Shown piece after piece: positions 4,186 through 11,426 of a stretch of DNA of 64,000 bases. The stretch is taken from contig LSRY02000007.1 in NCBI GenBank assembly GCA_001643675.2, forward strand, positions 1,426,001 to 1,490,000, given 5' to 3'. Positions within the stretch are counted from its first letter, which is position 1. Every line of letters starts with the position of its first letter. Origin of the DNA: Monocercomonoides exilis PA203. Its lineage: Eukaryota > Protista > Preaxostyla. Below the pieces are notes generated by a model, which saw nothing but the letters and a program-made list of their open reading frames with translations, had not been told where the DNA came from and searched no databases. The position numbers were made by a program, and so were the translations under genes.

Positions 4186-4528
4186 AGCATAAATTGTTAT
4201 CTCTCGGTTTTTCTGACAACAATTTTATTGGAAGATAAATATTTATTGTTATTCAATTCTTTAGAATATTGCTTTTTCAGAAAATACTATTTACTGAATG
4301 GATCGAACTGATACTTCCATTGATCAAACATATTTTTAGATAATTTTAATATTTTGAATTAAAAAATATGTGTTTGATTGATTTTCGAGGTTGATGACTT
4401 TGTTCGATGAATATTTGTTGATCACACTCAGAAAAGGCTAAAATGAAAGTGTTTACAACGTGAACGAAGTTGATCAATTTTCAAATTTTTTTCTTAAATT
4501 TATTAATTATTATAGCTTATTTCAAATA

Positions 4529-5493
4529 GGGTCAGAAATTTATCGGTACCCAAAAAATTAATCGGGACCTAAATTTTCTGACTCTCCAGAGCACTTTTAG
4601 AAAAAATTAAATAATAGAAAATTTTTAATATATTATCATATACTATTTCAGAAAATATTTTTTCATATTTTAATTTTTGTGAAAAAATCTGGTGTTTTTT
4701 GTTTTATTTTTCTGATCAAAGACTTGCTCGTATTTTCACGAGCTTTTTGTTTTGAGTGTTTTGAGTTATATCATTGTTAATAAACTGAACTTTTTTATGT
4801 TTTTGGTTATTTTTTGTTATTAAACACTTCGTTTTTTTATTATTTTTTCCATTTCACTAAATTTCAACAAAATGAAGAGTACATTTAAATAAATAAGTTT
4901 TTTCGTTAATTCAAAAGGGTAAATATATAAATTATCAACAAATAAAGGTATTCAAAAAGAAGAAAATCTGGAAATTTTATTGATCGAGATTATTTTACAA
5001 AAAAACATGTTATTGTGTATTTTTGTGTTTAAAACTTCAAATCATATTTTTTCATTTCAAAATTAAGGTGATACACATATCAATCAGTTTTATAACAATT
5101 CATCATTGAACAAAAACATGGTAACTCTTATTTCACAATTTTTTTAAAATTTTATCGATATTTAGTGAAATGGAAAAAATAATAAAAAAACGAAGTGTTT
5201 AATAACAAAAAATAACCAAAAACATAAAAAAGTTCAGTTTATTAACAATGATATAACTCAAAACACTCAAAACAAAAAGCTCGTGAAAATACGAGCAAGT
5301 CTTTGATCAGAAAAATAAAACAAAAAACACCAGATTTTTTCACAAAAATTAAAAAATTAAAAAATATTTTCTGAAATAGTATATGATAATATATTAAAAA
5401 TTTTCTATTATTTAATTTTTTCTAAAAGTGCTCTGGAGAGTCAGAAAATTTAGGTCCCGATTAATTTTTTGGGTACCGATAAATTTCTGACCC
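4529..5493. mobile_element. Non-autonomous foldback/MITE-like element with 334-bp terminal inverted repeats (4529-4862 / 5160-5493) and ~297-bp spacer
   Basis: GGGTCAGAAATTTATCGGTACCC... at left and ...GGGTACCGATAAATTTCTGACCC at right. Arms near-identical (about 2 mismatches seen). No coding capacity and no clear TSD. Confidence 0.85.
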
Positions 5494-6041: not shown

Positions 6042-6599
6042 TTTGTTTTTATTTTTTCAAAAATTATATCATTACAAGTTTTGATTTCCAGTGCTAAAAA
6101 TAACATAAAATTCTTGAAATTGAAAAATATTAAAGAAATTATTGAGTGGATCAAAATTCATAAAGCAAAAATCATATTTGATATGATTTTCAAAATATTA
6201 ACCAACGTGGCAAAATTTGTCAGAAATTTTTATTGAGAAAAAATGAAAAAATATGTGTGAAAATATATTTTATCATATCTTTTTTCGGGGTGTCCGTTAT
6301 TCAAAGACTGAACGTTTTTTAATAGTTAATTTTTATTCAAAAGAGAAAAAGAATAATTGTTGTTTTTTTAGACGACAAGTCTTCACCAAATCAAAGATAA
6401 AAATGTCTTCAATAATTTTTTTCACTTTTCAATGTTCATTGATTAATATTCAAGAGAAATTTTTGAACCCAAAATTTTGAATGAAAAAAAATTGATTTCA
6501 AGAATCATCACCCATATGATAGAACAATTTACTTCAGGCATTTACAAAAAAAAAATAATGAACCACGAATGAACTTTTTGTAATCGAAAAAGACAAATA

Positions 6600-7026: not shown

Positions 7027-7589
7027 TATAATAGGATCATTTTCTGAAATACGCGTGACGTTTCAAAACGTTTTGTTGTGATATCAAAGATACCTGTTAA
7101 TAGACATGAGAATCCAATTTTTTGTCATCCGAATGGTTTTATATTGTTAAAAGAAATGTAAAAATTTTGTGCTTCGAGCAAAAAAAAGAATGAAAGTCCG
7201 AATTTTCCTTCAAATGAAAAAAATAATCAAATATTGTCTGATTTCTGTTCCCATTCAAGAAACTTCACTTAAATGTCTATTAAAGCATTTTGAAAAATTA
7301 CAGATTTCGTTTGAATGATGAATTTCGAATGTTTTCAAGATTTTCGATCAAATCATGAAATTTCAAGTTGTGCAAAAAATACCGGCAAGTTCCAAGAATA
7401 TGGACCATCGATAAAAAATATTTTATATATTTATAACGAAATAAAATGGAATATTAATTTATTTAAAATTAGTTATTTTTGTCGAAAAAGTGTTTTTGAC
7501 TATTTTCCATTTTCTTTTGATCTATCCCATAACATTTTCTTGTTAATAACAGGTTTGTAATTTTTGTTTATTTTTCGAAAAAAACTTTC

Positions 7590-8060
7590 TTCACACTTTA
7601 ATGTGCTTTGGATTAAACAAGAATCTATATTGCTTTTTATGACTTAAATCATAGAACGAAGAATCAGCTTTGCTTACAAACAGCGTTGTTCATTTTTATC
7701 TGGCGTCTAGTTATGATTACGGAGAAGGAAGGAAGAATGCACAATTTCTTTTGAAGCGAAGGAGGATGACATAGCTTAAAAGATGGAGAACTTTTCGTAA
7801 AATGGAGCAGTTGAGCTATTTTGATGGAGATTCAGAGAACAACTTTGAACGAAGAAATGACACAAGAATGTATAGAAATTTTTGTGAATGTTTTGGAAGG
7901 ATTGAAAGAAAAGAATAAAGAAGAAGAGAAAGAGAAAGAGGAAGAAAGAAGGAAAGAGCTGAAAGTGAAATGTTTAACTAGATGGAAGAAGGATACGAAG
8001 ATTGTATCATTTGGCTGTGCTGTTATATTTGTCACGGTGTTTATGGAGAATAACAATTGA
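7590..8060 (+). pseudogene. Decayed 3' fragment of an expanded helical/ARM-like hypothetical protein family (cargo copy 1)
   Basis: Translates as NEESALLTNSVVHFYLASSYDYGEG ... MEIQRTTLNEEMTQECIEIFVNV, with stops and frameshifts. Paralogous to the minus-strand cargo (NEEYV*LHSSIVQVFRDAKENHGEI ... EEVLLRTVREECATEYINFLEGV). Confidence 0.65.
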
Positions 8061-8559
8061 TAAATGATTATCCACATTCTTTTGTGTATAAATAATTTAT
8101 CTGCATTAACATTCACTTCATCTTTTTTTATTTTCTTTTTTGATGATATTTTGCGCAGAAAACTCATTTGGTCTGGAAATAAAGGAATTCAAATGAGCAA
8201 AATTAGATAAAAGTGTTTTTTTAAAGAATACCAATACTTTTCAAGAAAGATGAACTTTTGCTTTAAAGTATATAATTAATAATAAGAAATGAGAAAAATC
8301 AACAGGAAGAGAATCAAATTTACAGTATTTTTTTGTTAATTTTGAGAAAGAAAAAATTATAAAATATAATTTAAATCTCTTAACAAAAACAACTTAAACA
8401 ACATAAAAATCCAAAACTCTTTCAATAATAAGCATCTCTGCTTTTAAACCTGAAATTGTCATTTCGAAATAATGGAGGATTAGGAAAACAGGTTAGTTAT
8501 TTCACAGCTCTACTGATTTTTGAGTTGCAAAGTGAAATGCATCTGATTTCTTTTGATAT

Positions 8560-10005
8560 TCACAAAATAATCACAAACATTCAACGATAAACCACAAACG
8601 TAATTACTTTTTAAGAACCCTTAAGCTTCATGAAAGCTTGTGGTGATATCTTCGTGTCCTTCTTCTTCCATCCATTATACATCTTCTTTTTGGATGTCTT
8701 TCTTTTCGCTTCTTCCTTTTCATTCTCCGTCTTTTTTTTCGACTTTTCAATACACCTTCCAAAAAATTGATATATTCTGTTGCACATTCTTCTCTCACTG
8801 TTCGCAGCAGAACTTCCTCCAAAGCATCATCGACAGCTTCACTCTTCAGCAAATATTTTTCTTTCGCTGCTTTGCTTTCCGCTTCTTTTCTTGAATATTG
8901 AATGAATAACTTACCAATTTCTCCATGATTTTCCTTTGCATCTCGAAACACCTGAACAATGCTGCTGTGAAGTCAAACATATTCTTCATTCCTCAATAAA
9001 CAATTGCCACAATAAGTTCTCAATGTTTGCATTTATCTCAATAAAACAAGATCTTCTTTTGCCTCTTTTCCTTCCTTTTTTTCTTTTCTCTTCCAATCCA
9101 CATTTCTTTTCGGCTCTTCGATTTCTCTTCTTGCTTCTCTCACAAAATGCAATTCATTTGTGCTCACTTCATCAAAGATTTTGTCGTTGTAAAATCTGTG
9201 TAACAAAAAATCCAAGCAGACAAATATGTGAGTTGAGTCAGGTTGTAATATTCCTGATTAAATTTCAAAATATAAGCCATTTCCTTCATATCAAGCTCTT
9301 CAATCACAACGTGATAAAAAACATGAAATAAATCAATAATGAAAAAAAAGAAATAGACTTTCACACACGTAATAATTGTCAATGTTCCTAAAAGTCAATA
9401 AAGACATTTCCGCATCCTTTTGTACCTCCTCCCCTTCTTCTTTCTTCAATGTGGCTTTCAGATCACATCGCACACAAATGCGAAGCATTTCAGTTTTGGA
9501 GATGTAACTTTACGGCATATTGCATTCACAAATATGTGAATAAATATTTTCATTTTTTTCCTCTTTTTTCTTATCTTCATCAAATCAGCTTTATCAATCA
9601 ATCGCTCAACGACGATATTCTTAATCCATTGTTATTCTTGATTTTCAATACCCTGTTATATCCTAAGTGCTTAAACAACAAAATAACATTCTCCAAAGTC
9701 AGTTTCTTAACTTCTATCATTTTTTCTATTTTGTTGAATGTTTCTTCGTTGATAATGGATTCAAGTTAATAAAAATTCATTTCTTCAATAAATTCTTTCA
9801 TTTCTTCAATAAATTCTTTCATTTCTTCAATTTTCTGTTTCTTCTCAGTTTCAGTAAATTGTTTTAATTGGAAAATTTCTCTGAAAAAATTGAAAAATCA
9901 AAAGAGAAAAAAGAAGCATTTATTTAAATTATCATTCTTTACTAATAAATTCAAGCATACCCAGAAATATTTTTTTGTTTTAGAGAAACTGTGAAATCGC
10001 AACAT
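8560..10005 (-). pseudogene. Near full-length decayed, intron-containing member of the same hypothetical protein family (cargo copy 2)
   Basis: Broken ORFs 8628-8951, 9033-9215 and 9164-9382 are collinear (QEYYNLTQLTYLSAW, NELHFVREARREIEE, VFRDAKENHGEI). ATG at 10005 and a GTATG...TTTTCAG intron at ~9960-9881. 21-bp tandem repeat (IEEMKEF) at ~9775-9830. Confidence 0.7.
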
Positions 10006-10450
10006 TATTTCAAAATAGCTCAACTGCTCCATTTTACGAAAAGTTCTCCATCTTTTAAGCTATGTCATCCTCCTTCGCTTCAAAAGAAATTGTGCATTCT
10101 TCCTTCCTTCTCCGTAATCATAACTAGACGCCAGATAAAAATGAACAACGCTGTTTGTAAGCAAAGCTGATTCTTCGTTCTATGATTTAAGTCATAAAAA
10201 GCAATATAGATTCTTGTTTAATCCAAAGCACATTAAAGTGTGAAGAAAGTTTTTTTCGAAAAATAAACAAAAATTACAAACCTGTTATTAACAAGAAAAT
10301 GTTATGGGATAGATCAAAAGAAAATGGAAAATAGTCAAAAACACTTTTTCGACAAAAATAACTAATTTTAAATAAATTAATATTCCATTTTATTTCGTTA
10401 TAAATATATAAAATATTTTTTATCGATGGTCCATATTCTTGGAACTTGCC

Positions 10451-10834
10451 AAAATACCGAACATCGCAAAAAATATCGGACAAGATCGATTTCACAAAAA
10501 CTGCAAGTAGAATAATTCTGCAAATTTTCCTCAAAACACATCTCATTAATGCAAATTTATTTAAAAAACAAAACTTTCAAAATTGCTTCATTTGTGCTTC
10601 AAATAAAAAATTATTACTAAAAATCTCGGAGAAAAATGATTTTGATTTACTCCGTTATTTCAAAAATTATTTTTTTTGCGCACAAATGAGGCTATTTTGA
10701 AAATGTTGTGAATAAAATGAATTTGCATTAATGAGATGTGTTTTGAGGAAAATTGTCAGAATCATTCCTCTTGTAGTTTTTGTGAAATCGATCTTGTCCG
10801 ATATTTTTTGCGATGTCCTGTATTTTTTGCACAA
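10451..10834. mobile_element. Older foldback MITE whose left tip (7368-7383) was separated by the 3-kb insertion
   Basis: 10451-~10605 is an imperfect inverted repeat of ~10672-10834. Joining 7368-7383 to 10459 gives TTGTGCAAAAAATACCGAACATCGC, matching the reverse complement of the right end, TTGTGCAAAAAATACAGGACATCGC. Confidence 0.8.
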
Positions 10835-11426
10835 TTTGTTGTTTGTGATTCTCATTTCGTTTTGATGTAAAGAAAGTTCCAATCTTTTTTTGGAAAACGG
10901 ACATCCTCGCAAACAATTGTGAAAACCTGATATTTCTTTTTCCAGGTTTGATAAAATGAATTTTTTACACTCTGGATATCGGAAATAAATCCCTGTAATC
11001 GAAATTGTTGTGAAGAAAACTTCATTGATAATCGCAAATTATATTGTGAAACAAAGGAAAAAATTGAAAAAAAATTTTTTAATAGAAAAATGATCTTTGA
11101 AAAAAATATAATGAATATATATATATATATATATAGATATATAGTGAATATTGTTAATTTTATATTTTCGCAATATTTTCGAAAAAAAACATCTTTTTCC
11201 AATAAATAAAAGTTCAATATAAAATTTTTGATGATCTCAGTCTTCAAAGTTTTTTTCCTTCACAAGAAGGTGTTGGTTTTTTATTTTCAGTTGATAAATA
11301 ATTATTCTTTTTCATTTCAGAATAACAATGAAAATAATAATTTTTTATATGATCGATAAATTTTTCATATAAAGGGTTGTTCTTTTGATCAATTTGTTTT
11401 GATTCACAAAATCTTCTTTTATTGAA

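Follow-up and report, generated by a model that had tools for sequence, protein, structure and literature searches.

How does a transposon that encodes no transposase come to hold two genes of its host: did it pick them up itself, or did it inherit them? The question is raised by a 3067-bp unit at positions 7384-10450 of a 64,000-nt stretch of the Monocercomonoides exilis PA203 genome, hereafter the window (contig LSRY02000007.1, positions 1,426,001 to 1,490,000; C69:1426001-1490000 in the labels used below). An original prediction, made from the sequence, had described the unit as a recently moved Pack-type element with Merlin-like ends that captured genomic pieces of a host gene family and could be a vehicle for that family's expansion. 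We compared the unit with its relatives in the 82.3-Mb, 101-contig M. exilis assembly. All counts from these genome searches are lower bounds, scoring having been limited to the best candidates. The comparison points to a different history. With a probability of about 0.85, the unit is a non-autonomous derivative of a Merlin family that arose by deletion and end duplication and inherited its cargo.

A transposed element with identical arms

According to a repeat search of the window, the unit is bounded by two inverted arms of 441 nt each that are 100% complementary and 2185 nt apart. A perfect 8-bp target site duplication (TSD), AAAATACC, abuts both ends (Table 1). The termini begin GGCAAGTTCCAAGAATATGG by direct reading of the sequence. 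When the transposase of the Merlin family described below was used as a tblastn query against the window, there were zero matches; the element holds no transposase.

The insertion site lies within another repeat. On its right, the element adjoins an imperfect 165-nt palindrome (10451-10615 versus 10662-10826), the left arm of which continues on the far side of the element at 7364-7383. The split repeat is a miniature inverted-repeat transposable element (MITE), for which a query of 10459-10900 returned 530 candidates genome-wide and at least 40 scored copies. We removed the 3067 bp and one AAAATACC in a script, joined the flanks and aligned the product to the MITE copies. The joined flanks aligned gap-free over the junction to ~10 copies, each with a single AAAATACC, and the MITE paralogues read ...AAAATACCGGACATCGCA... 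at the insertion site. Such paralogous empty sites are evidence that the element inserted precisely, at a point 12 bp into the MITE, and duplicated 8 bp. Together, the TSD, the paralogous empty sites and the multi-copy family described below demonstrate that the unit is a genuine non-autonomous element moved by transposition. The length of the unit, its mismatch-free arms, its perfect TSD, the lack of a transposase and its nature as a non-autonomous mobile element had all been described correctly in the original prediction.

A Merlin family with an autonomous partner

The original prediction had called for a genome-wide search with the arm. Of 116 candidates, at least 40 were scored as matches, and many lay in inverted pairs 1.9-5.9 kb apart; other copies also had TSDs and shared the cargo. 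The window element and nearly all copies have the termini GGCAAGTTCC, which start GGCAA and fit the GGNRM of Merlin. Perfect 8-bp TSDs flanked 8 of the 15 paired copies, namely the window element, L031 and L036-L041.

Three full-length pairs of 5.8-5.9 kb were examined (L031, L032 and L033); copies on C1 and C25 (L034, L035 and L047) also hold remains of a transposase. The autonomous partner is L031 (C2:349296-355161), which is 5866 bp long, is flanked by the TSD AAACATTT and has terminal inverted repeats (TIRs) of 190 bp at 99.5% identity. Its termini differ from those of the window element at 1 of 30 nt. Its uninterrupted open reading frame (ORF) of 340 aa, the likely start of which is Met44, matched PF12762 (DDE_Tnp_IS1595) at 61.5 bits, the cutoff being 27. 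The motifs VQVD186E, WSD249E and AIE286 can be read from the sequence, the Pfam match itself spanning residues 192-316 only. L031, L032 and L033 are colinear end to end, with identities of 87-91% in the transposase half and 70-77% in the cargo half. In the mid-part of the full-length element (~2.6-4.4 kb), no clean conserved ORF was found. The termini, the length of the TSD and the transposase of the partner establish that the window element belongs to the Merlin superfamily as delimited in PMC8101967, in line with the suggestion from its ends.

The presence of Merlin in M. exilis is already published. More specifically, Lopes et al. (2021, PLoS One; PMC8101967) reported more than 100 Merlin copies in at least 7 families from Monocercomonoides sp. 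PA203 (= M. exilis), and their supplementary contig file includes L031 itself, recognised by its flank, aaagaaatgttt, and the adjoining terminus, GGCAAGTTCCAAGTATATGGACC. The published families and the present one share the organism and superfamily, 8-bp TSDs without a clear target consensus and a DDE_Tnp_IS1595 transposase. By contrast, the published TIRs are mostly 23-29 bp, whereas here the TIR proper is ~189 bp, derivative arms measure 245-625 bp and half of the element is host-derived. Neither the carriage of host genes by an autonomous Merlin lineage nor the homogenisation of long arms within copies appears in the main text of that paper; the word 'captured' is likewise absent from the main text, and 'non-autonomous' occurs nowhere in the paper. 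These two features are modestly new for the superfamily.

Two side observations concern the family at large. A long low-complexity tract of serine/glutamate type lies beside the transposase gene in the full-length copies (L031 ~4390-5040, L032 1500-2040, L033 4280-4940) and recalls internal tandem repeats that PMC8101967 describes in Merlin. Genome-wide, there were 872 candidate loci of Merlin-type transposases. Many contain uninterrupted frames of 300-400 aa that are only 29-39% identical to the transposase of this family, and the loci point to a diversity far above the 7 published families.

Derivation of the window copy from a full-length element

In blastn comparisons with the fetched copies, 7384-10018 was colinear with the non-transposase half of the full-length copies. 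Against L032, the alignment ran from position 6268 to 3582 at 82-89% identity. Identity was 82-84% for L034, L035 and L047, and 67% for L031 and L033. The ~3.2-kb transposase half is gone from the window copy.

The right arm reveals how the copy is composed. The two ends of full-length copies share only ~189 bp with each other. This TIR proper corresponds to the first ~189 bp of the left arm in the window (7384-7572), the remainder of that arm being the subterminal region of the non-transposase end. The right arm of the window copy matches the left, non-transposase end across all 441 bp, including the 252 bp (positions 190-441) that are missing from the transposase end. As the match extends beyond 189 bp, the copy comprises ~2.63 kb from the left of a full-length element, followed by its own first 441 bp again, in inverted orientation. 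At the inner junction (10009/10010), where relatives read TTTTATAACAG or TTTCAAAACAA, the window turns to the inverted arm, TCAAAATAGC. The imperfect microhomology at this junction (Table 1) would be consistent with a template switch.

The family includes other derivatives of this type, with arms of 245, 248, 254, 350 and 376 bp, as well as four 1.86-kb copies with arms of 615-625 bp. In three further copies, L042 (C25:98700-101500), L043 (C40:656200-659600) and L050 (C33:390000-399999), the inverted repeat runs 215, 174 and ~50 bp, respectively, past the terminus into the flank, and no TSD was found at any of the three. They look like untransposed one-ended foldbacks, or assembly artefacts.

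The comparisons suggest the following course of events. The full-length element, of ~5.9 kb with TIRs of ~189 bp, contains an IS1595-type transposase in one half and a host-derived passenger module in the other. The window copy retained the left ~2.63 kb, comprising the TIR and the passenger module, and lost the transposase half. Its own first 441 bp, inverted, became the new right end, most likely because replication or gap repair switched strand or template at a short microhomology. With a transposase-binding terminus on both ends, cut-and-paste transposition would be possible with transposase supplied in trans, and the partner at C2:349296-355161 has an intact ORF. The derivative landed in the MITE, duplicating 8 bp.

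Internal-deletion and end-duplication derivatives are familiar from other cut-and-paste transposons, such as the Ds-type derivatives of Ac and the long-TIR, foldback-like Galileo. Like these, the window copy is colinear with an autonomous parent, is devoid of transposase, has long arms derived from one end and preserves arm identity within the copy. Unlike them, it belongs to the Merlin superfamily and its arms hold sequence derived from host genes; moreover, the mechanism of its formation is deduced from two sources only, the junction and the one-ended foldbacks at other genomic loci. Overall, the window copy is a fairly ordinary derivative of its family, and the family provides concrete material for the study of how long-TIR derivatives originate.

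Table 1. Features of the window copy and its insertion site (window coordinates)
Feature	Position	Strand	Basis or remark
TSD, left copy, AAAATACC	7376-7383	.	single copy in MITE paralogues
Left 441-bp arm, starts GGCAAGTTCCAAGAATATGGACC	7384-7824	+	repeat search, comparison with copies
Gene A, truncated and decayed 3' part (~residues 77-200 of the exon-2 region), EEGYED motif	7700-8045	+	tblastn
Spacer between the convergent gene copies, also at free convergent-pair loci	8046-8554	.	C33:60294-61180 aligns over the spacer at 73%
Gene B, full-length but decayed; exon 2 ~8555-9310, intron-homologous 9311-9368, exon 1 ~9369-9880	8555-9880	-	
Divergent patch in gene B, 51-78% identical to every sister element	8734-9183	-	flanks ~90-98% identical to one sister or another
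Inner junction; parental colinearity stops, inverted arm starts at 10010	10002-10018	.	imperfect microhomology of ~6-8 bp (TCAAAA..)
Right 441-bp arm, matching the left end exactly in inverted orientation, not the parent's transposase end	10010-10450	-	
TSD, right copy, AAAATACC	10451-10458	.	
Host MITE, ~380 bp, palindromic, split by the Merlin insertion; first ~12 bp at 7372-7383	10459-10830	.	

An inherited cargo of two decayed genes

The cargo consists of two opposed, decayed paralogues, in agreement with the original prediction: the truncated gene A and the full-length gene B. Gene A starts inside the arm. Its first ~125 bp lie within the left arm, and are therefore present in the right arm as well. 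Gene B is interrupted by at least one frameshift and, over the 292 codons aligned in 8555-9533, by 7 stops. In its intron-homologous stretch (- strand), the 5' GT is kept but the acceptor AG has mutated to AC, such that the GT-AG structure previously described survives at the donor and is lost at the acceptor. In the sister copy L032, both splice sites survive at this position (GT...TAG). In a free member of the family (L046 880-2154), a 57-nt GTGTGT...CAG intron separates two exons, at a position shared with the Merlin-borne copies. This shared intron position indicates that the cargo originated from genomic DNA and not from cDNA, as had been proposed.

We used the best-preserved internal ORF (L032 4366-5004) as the tblastn query for the cargo. 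Every copy examined, including those of ~5.9 kb, had the same layout: a truncated gene (~residues 77-195) located at element position ~272 by the non-transposase TIR, followed by a full copy on the opposite strand. The gene A fragment at this position was also found in L031, L033, L036-L041, L048 and L049. As the cargo is colinear in ~5.9-kb copies that contain a transposase or its remains, these data indicate that it is ancestral and that the window copy inherited rather than captured it. Most free members are intact; by contrast, 1-7 stops interrupt the Merlin-borne genes, including those beside the intact transposase.

Homogenised arms and a mosaic interior

The four 1.86-kb copies were used to compare arms within and between elements. 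The two arms of the same copy were 98.4-100% identical. Between copies, the arms were 76-86% identical in 5 of 6 pairs, the pair L039/L041 standing at 97%, and the central regions were 87-93% identical. The much higher identity of arms within than between copies indicates that arms are homogenised within copies, probably by intra-element gene conversion. It follows that perfect arms do not date an insertion, and the description of the window element as recently moved, which had been based on them, loses its ground.

The interior of the window copy is composite. Its first part (7384-8733) is ~90-98% identical to L046 (C91:171259...), and 9184-9933 is ~82-94% identical to L032, L034 and L047, with L047 dropping to 74% in the last 150 bp. 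The divergent patch in gene B lies between these well-matched segments, which identifies the window copy as a mosaic or recombinant. Identity over the whole interior reaches 83% at most for any copy in the genome, and the derivative with 441-bp arms is thus a singleton.

History of the cargo: one capture or several

A maximum-likelihood tree was calculated from 10 Merlin-borne and 20 free sequences, using tblastn pieces placed on P0004 coordinates with X at stops. Several points weigh against the reading of the window copy as a deletion and end-duplication derivative with inherited cargo, and the first comes from this tree. The Merlin-borne genes did not form one clade, and well-supported branches force at least two origins, which could mean repeated acquisition instead of one capture followed by exchange. 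For the divergent patch, a genome search with 8700-9200 found no donor above 74% identity, the best being a free member at C45:597759. Further, the genome lacks the exact parent: the copy is mosaic and its closest match over the interior reaches 83%. The junction microhomology is consequently read against relatives and not against the true parent. The structure of the window copy is read from the assembled sequence. Finally, mobilisation in trans and gene conversion of the arms are inferred and not observed.

The tree bears most directly on the idea that different sub-lineages of this Merlin family acquired their cargo independently, at least twice. The full genes borne by Merlin fall into at least two separate, well-supported groups, and the cargo halves of the sub-lineages differ by 30-38% (62-72% identity in the gene body), which is about as far apart as unrelated members of the family. 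We nonetheless consider repeated capture unlikely, although it deserves real weight. In all sub-lineages, the TIR-proximal sequence gives way to the truncated gene at the same element position (~272), and identity across this point, up to element position ~355, is 84% and exceeds a family background of ~67%. In addition, the window copy and L046 are 94-98% identical in their backbones and only 51-66% identical in the body of the cargo. Sisters with near-identical backbones that differ by 34-49% in the gene body indicate that replacement after capture occurs.

We favour a single capture, after which segments of the cargo may have been replaced by paralogues. The passenger module would have been taken from host DNA as the 3' part of one gene together with a complete, intron-containing gene, arranged tail to tail as at transposon-free loci. 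Judging from the mosaicism, the decaying cargo would then have been partly overwritten by other paralogues among close sisters. Recent local conversion was considered for L046 and rejected: its Merlin-borne gene shares only 70% identity with the free gene next to it, although the two grouped in the tree.

The host family and the direction of transfer

The family from which the cargo derives is very large. The internal-ORF query returned 1988 candidate loci in the genome, and a second query, a free member, returned 1873. All 150 loci scored in the internal-ORF search had E<1e-45, and most were uninterrupted open frames of ~254 aa. Database matches of the cargo protein were annotated 'uncharacterized protein MONOS_...' of M. 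exilis, and the protein had no Pfam domain match. The original prediction was thus correct in recalling a large Monocercomonoides family.

The proposal of a helical protein is borne out by the model that AlphaFold predicted for P0004 from 21 sequences. The model is all-alpha, with 17 helices, a predicted local distance difference test (pLDDT) score of 82.6 and a predicted template modelling (pTM) score of 0.81. The best PDB matches found by Foldseek were armadillo-repeat proteins, the top ones designed, with E values from 6e-4 and template modelling (TM) scores of ~0.5-0.57. These matches assign the family a predicted armadillo-like, all-alpha fold; no Pfam hit places it in a named armadillo family. 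NCBI gives family member P0014 the name 'TSET complex, TPLATE subunit B', which is probably misleading.

Free loci were assessed by their coordinates and through L046, L064 and L065. Several loci without a Merlin terminus resemble the cargo as a whole. Those at C19:321.5-324.5 kb, C19:278.5-281.5 kb, C33:59.8-61.2 kb, C30:260.9-262.7 kb and C22:1026-1028 kb are colinear with the cargo, including the spacer and the two tail-to-tail genes, and L065 shows the pair directly. The module of the element looks like a piece of such a free locus, cut inside one gene.

The suggestion that the element could be a vehicle for the expansion of this family did not hold. Among the 150 best matches to the internal-ORF query, ~5 lay in this Merlin family (C25:914865, C1:235136, C25:1886655, C37:450540 and C19:279112); among those to the free-member query, 0 of 150 did. 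According to coordinate lists compared by hand, only 2 further members had a listed Merlin transposase of any family within 3 kb, with ~1 expected by chance. Close paralogues were instead clustered: of the 150 best matches each, the free-member query had ~45 on C37 and the internal-ORF query 24 on C48. Such clustering on single contigs argues for local duplication. The small number of family loci in Merlin, the intact free copies and the local clusters together indicate that the element is a carrier of a passenger and not the vehicle of the family; moreover, the derivative with 441-bp arms is found once.

The same data bear on the opposite direction of transfer, in which the armadillo-like gene would be an accessory gene of Merlin and the ~2,000 genomic copies would be transposon-derived. 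This possibility is brought up by the size and lineage specificity of the family and by the tree, in which Merlin-borne copies are interspersed among free ones. In addition, 35% of a nanopore assembly of M. exilis with a read N50 of 8.9 kb was classed as 'unclassified repeat' (PMC8767320). We regard this direction as very improbable. Beyond the few top matches within this Merlin family, the near-chance number of members close to listed Merlin transposases and the clusters on C37 and C48, the free copies are mostly intact whereas the Merlin-borne ones are decayed even beside an intact transposase. Further, one Merlin-borne copy is truncated at the subterminal boundary, as expected for a capture breakpoint.

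Overall, the huge armadillo-like family of M. exilis was not spread by this transposon; instead, part of the family was taken up by a transposon lineage and has travelled with it ever since. Some of the 35% 'unclassified repeat' can be assigned to one long-TIR Merlin family with deletion, end-duplicated and one-ended foldback copies. A broader role is conceivable, in which Merlin elements of M. exilis would act as mobile acceptors and donors that keep exchanging sequence with the ~2,000-member host family, their cargo gene being overwritten time and again by paralogues. The long-arm derivatives would place host-gene sequence in perfect, hairpin-forming 441-bp arms; if transcribed, these arms could feed an Argonaute machinery and influence the family or the transposon. 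We consider this scenario speculative and rather improbable. The genome contains 4 Piwi-domain loci. The gene-derived part of the arms is only 60-75% identical to free family members, making efficient RNA targeting unlikely.

Unlikely for the window copy: Pack-type capture or an assembly artefact

The original prediction had classified the unit as Pack-type. In part, this description fits: as in the Pack-MULE and Pack-TYPE elements of plants, a TIR- and TSD-bounded unit without transposase, here with long arms, encloses host-gene sequence that includes an intron. The part of the description that fails is capture by this copy. In Pack-type systems, the non-autonomous element itself acquires fragments, which differ between copies, and the superfamilies concerned are Mutator, CACTA or hAT. 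Here, the superfamily is Merlin and the module is inherited and common to the ~5.9-kb copies. That the non-autonomous element itself picked up host fragments between Merlin ends is extremely unlikely, given that the two gene pieces recur with unchanged order, orientation and distance from the terminus in the ~5.9-kb copies and in every derivative examined, and that colinearity between the interior of the window copy and the ~5.9-kb copies extends from the terminus as far as 10018.

Assembly from nanopore reads, the many large perfect palindromes in the genome and the three Merlin ends with an inverted repeat running into the flank bring to mind an artefactual right arm, such as a nanopore foldback chimaera, to which we give almost no credence: the inverted repeat ends exactly at both transposon termini, whereas a foldback would invert the flank too; the element is flanked by an 8-bp direct duplication, of which MITE paralogues have a single copy; its 3067 bp fall below the published read N50 (8.9 kb); and there are several independent long-arm derivatives with TSDs.

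Large mirror-image arrangements were seen elsewhere in the assembly. At C1:231082-270739, the Merlin copies L034 and L035 are mirror-symmetric around ~C1:250,905, which points to an inverted duplication of at least 40 kb. Mirror pairs of equal score were also present on C33 (59.8/100.4 kb), C80 (640.8/649.8 kb), C35 (474.3/491.9 kb) and C25 (1119.9/1149.7 kb). Such mirror-image pairs are either real palindromes or nanopore assembly artefacts.

Surroundings of the element

The arms of the MITE that received the element are ~165 nt long and 86% identical, and other copies are ~80-83% identical to the MITE in the window. A second inverted-repeat element is located at 4530-5492. Its arms of ~348 nt are 98% identical, its termini read GGTCAGAAATTTATCGG..., and no obvious 8-bp TSD was found around it. 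The region from 4.2 to 11.6 kb, between two long ORFs, is a small, AT-rich transposon nest with a GC content of 25-29%.

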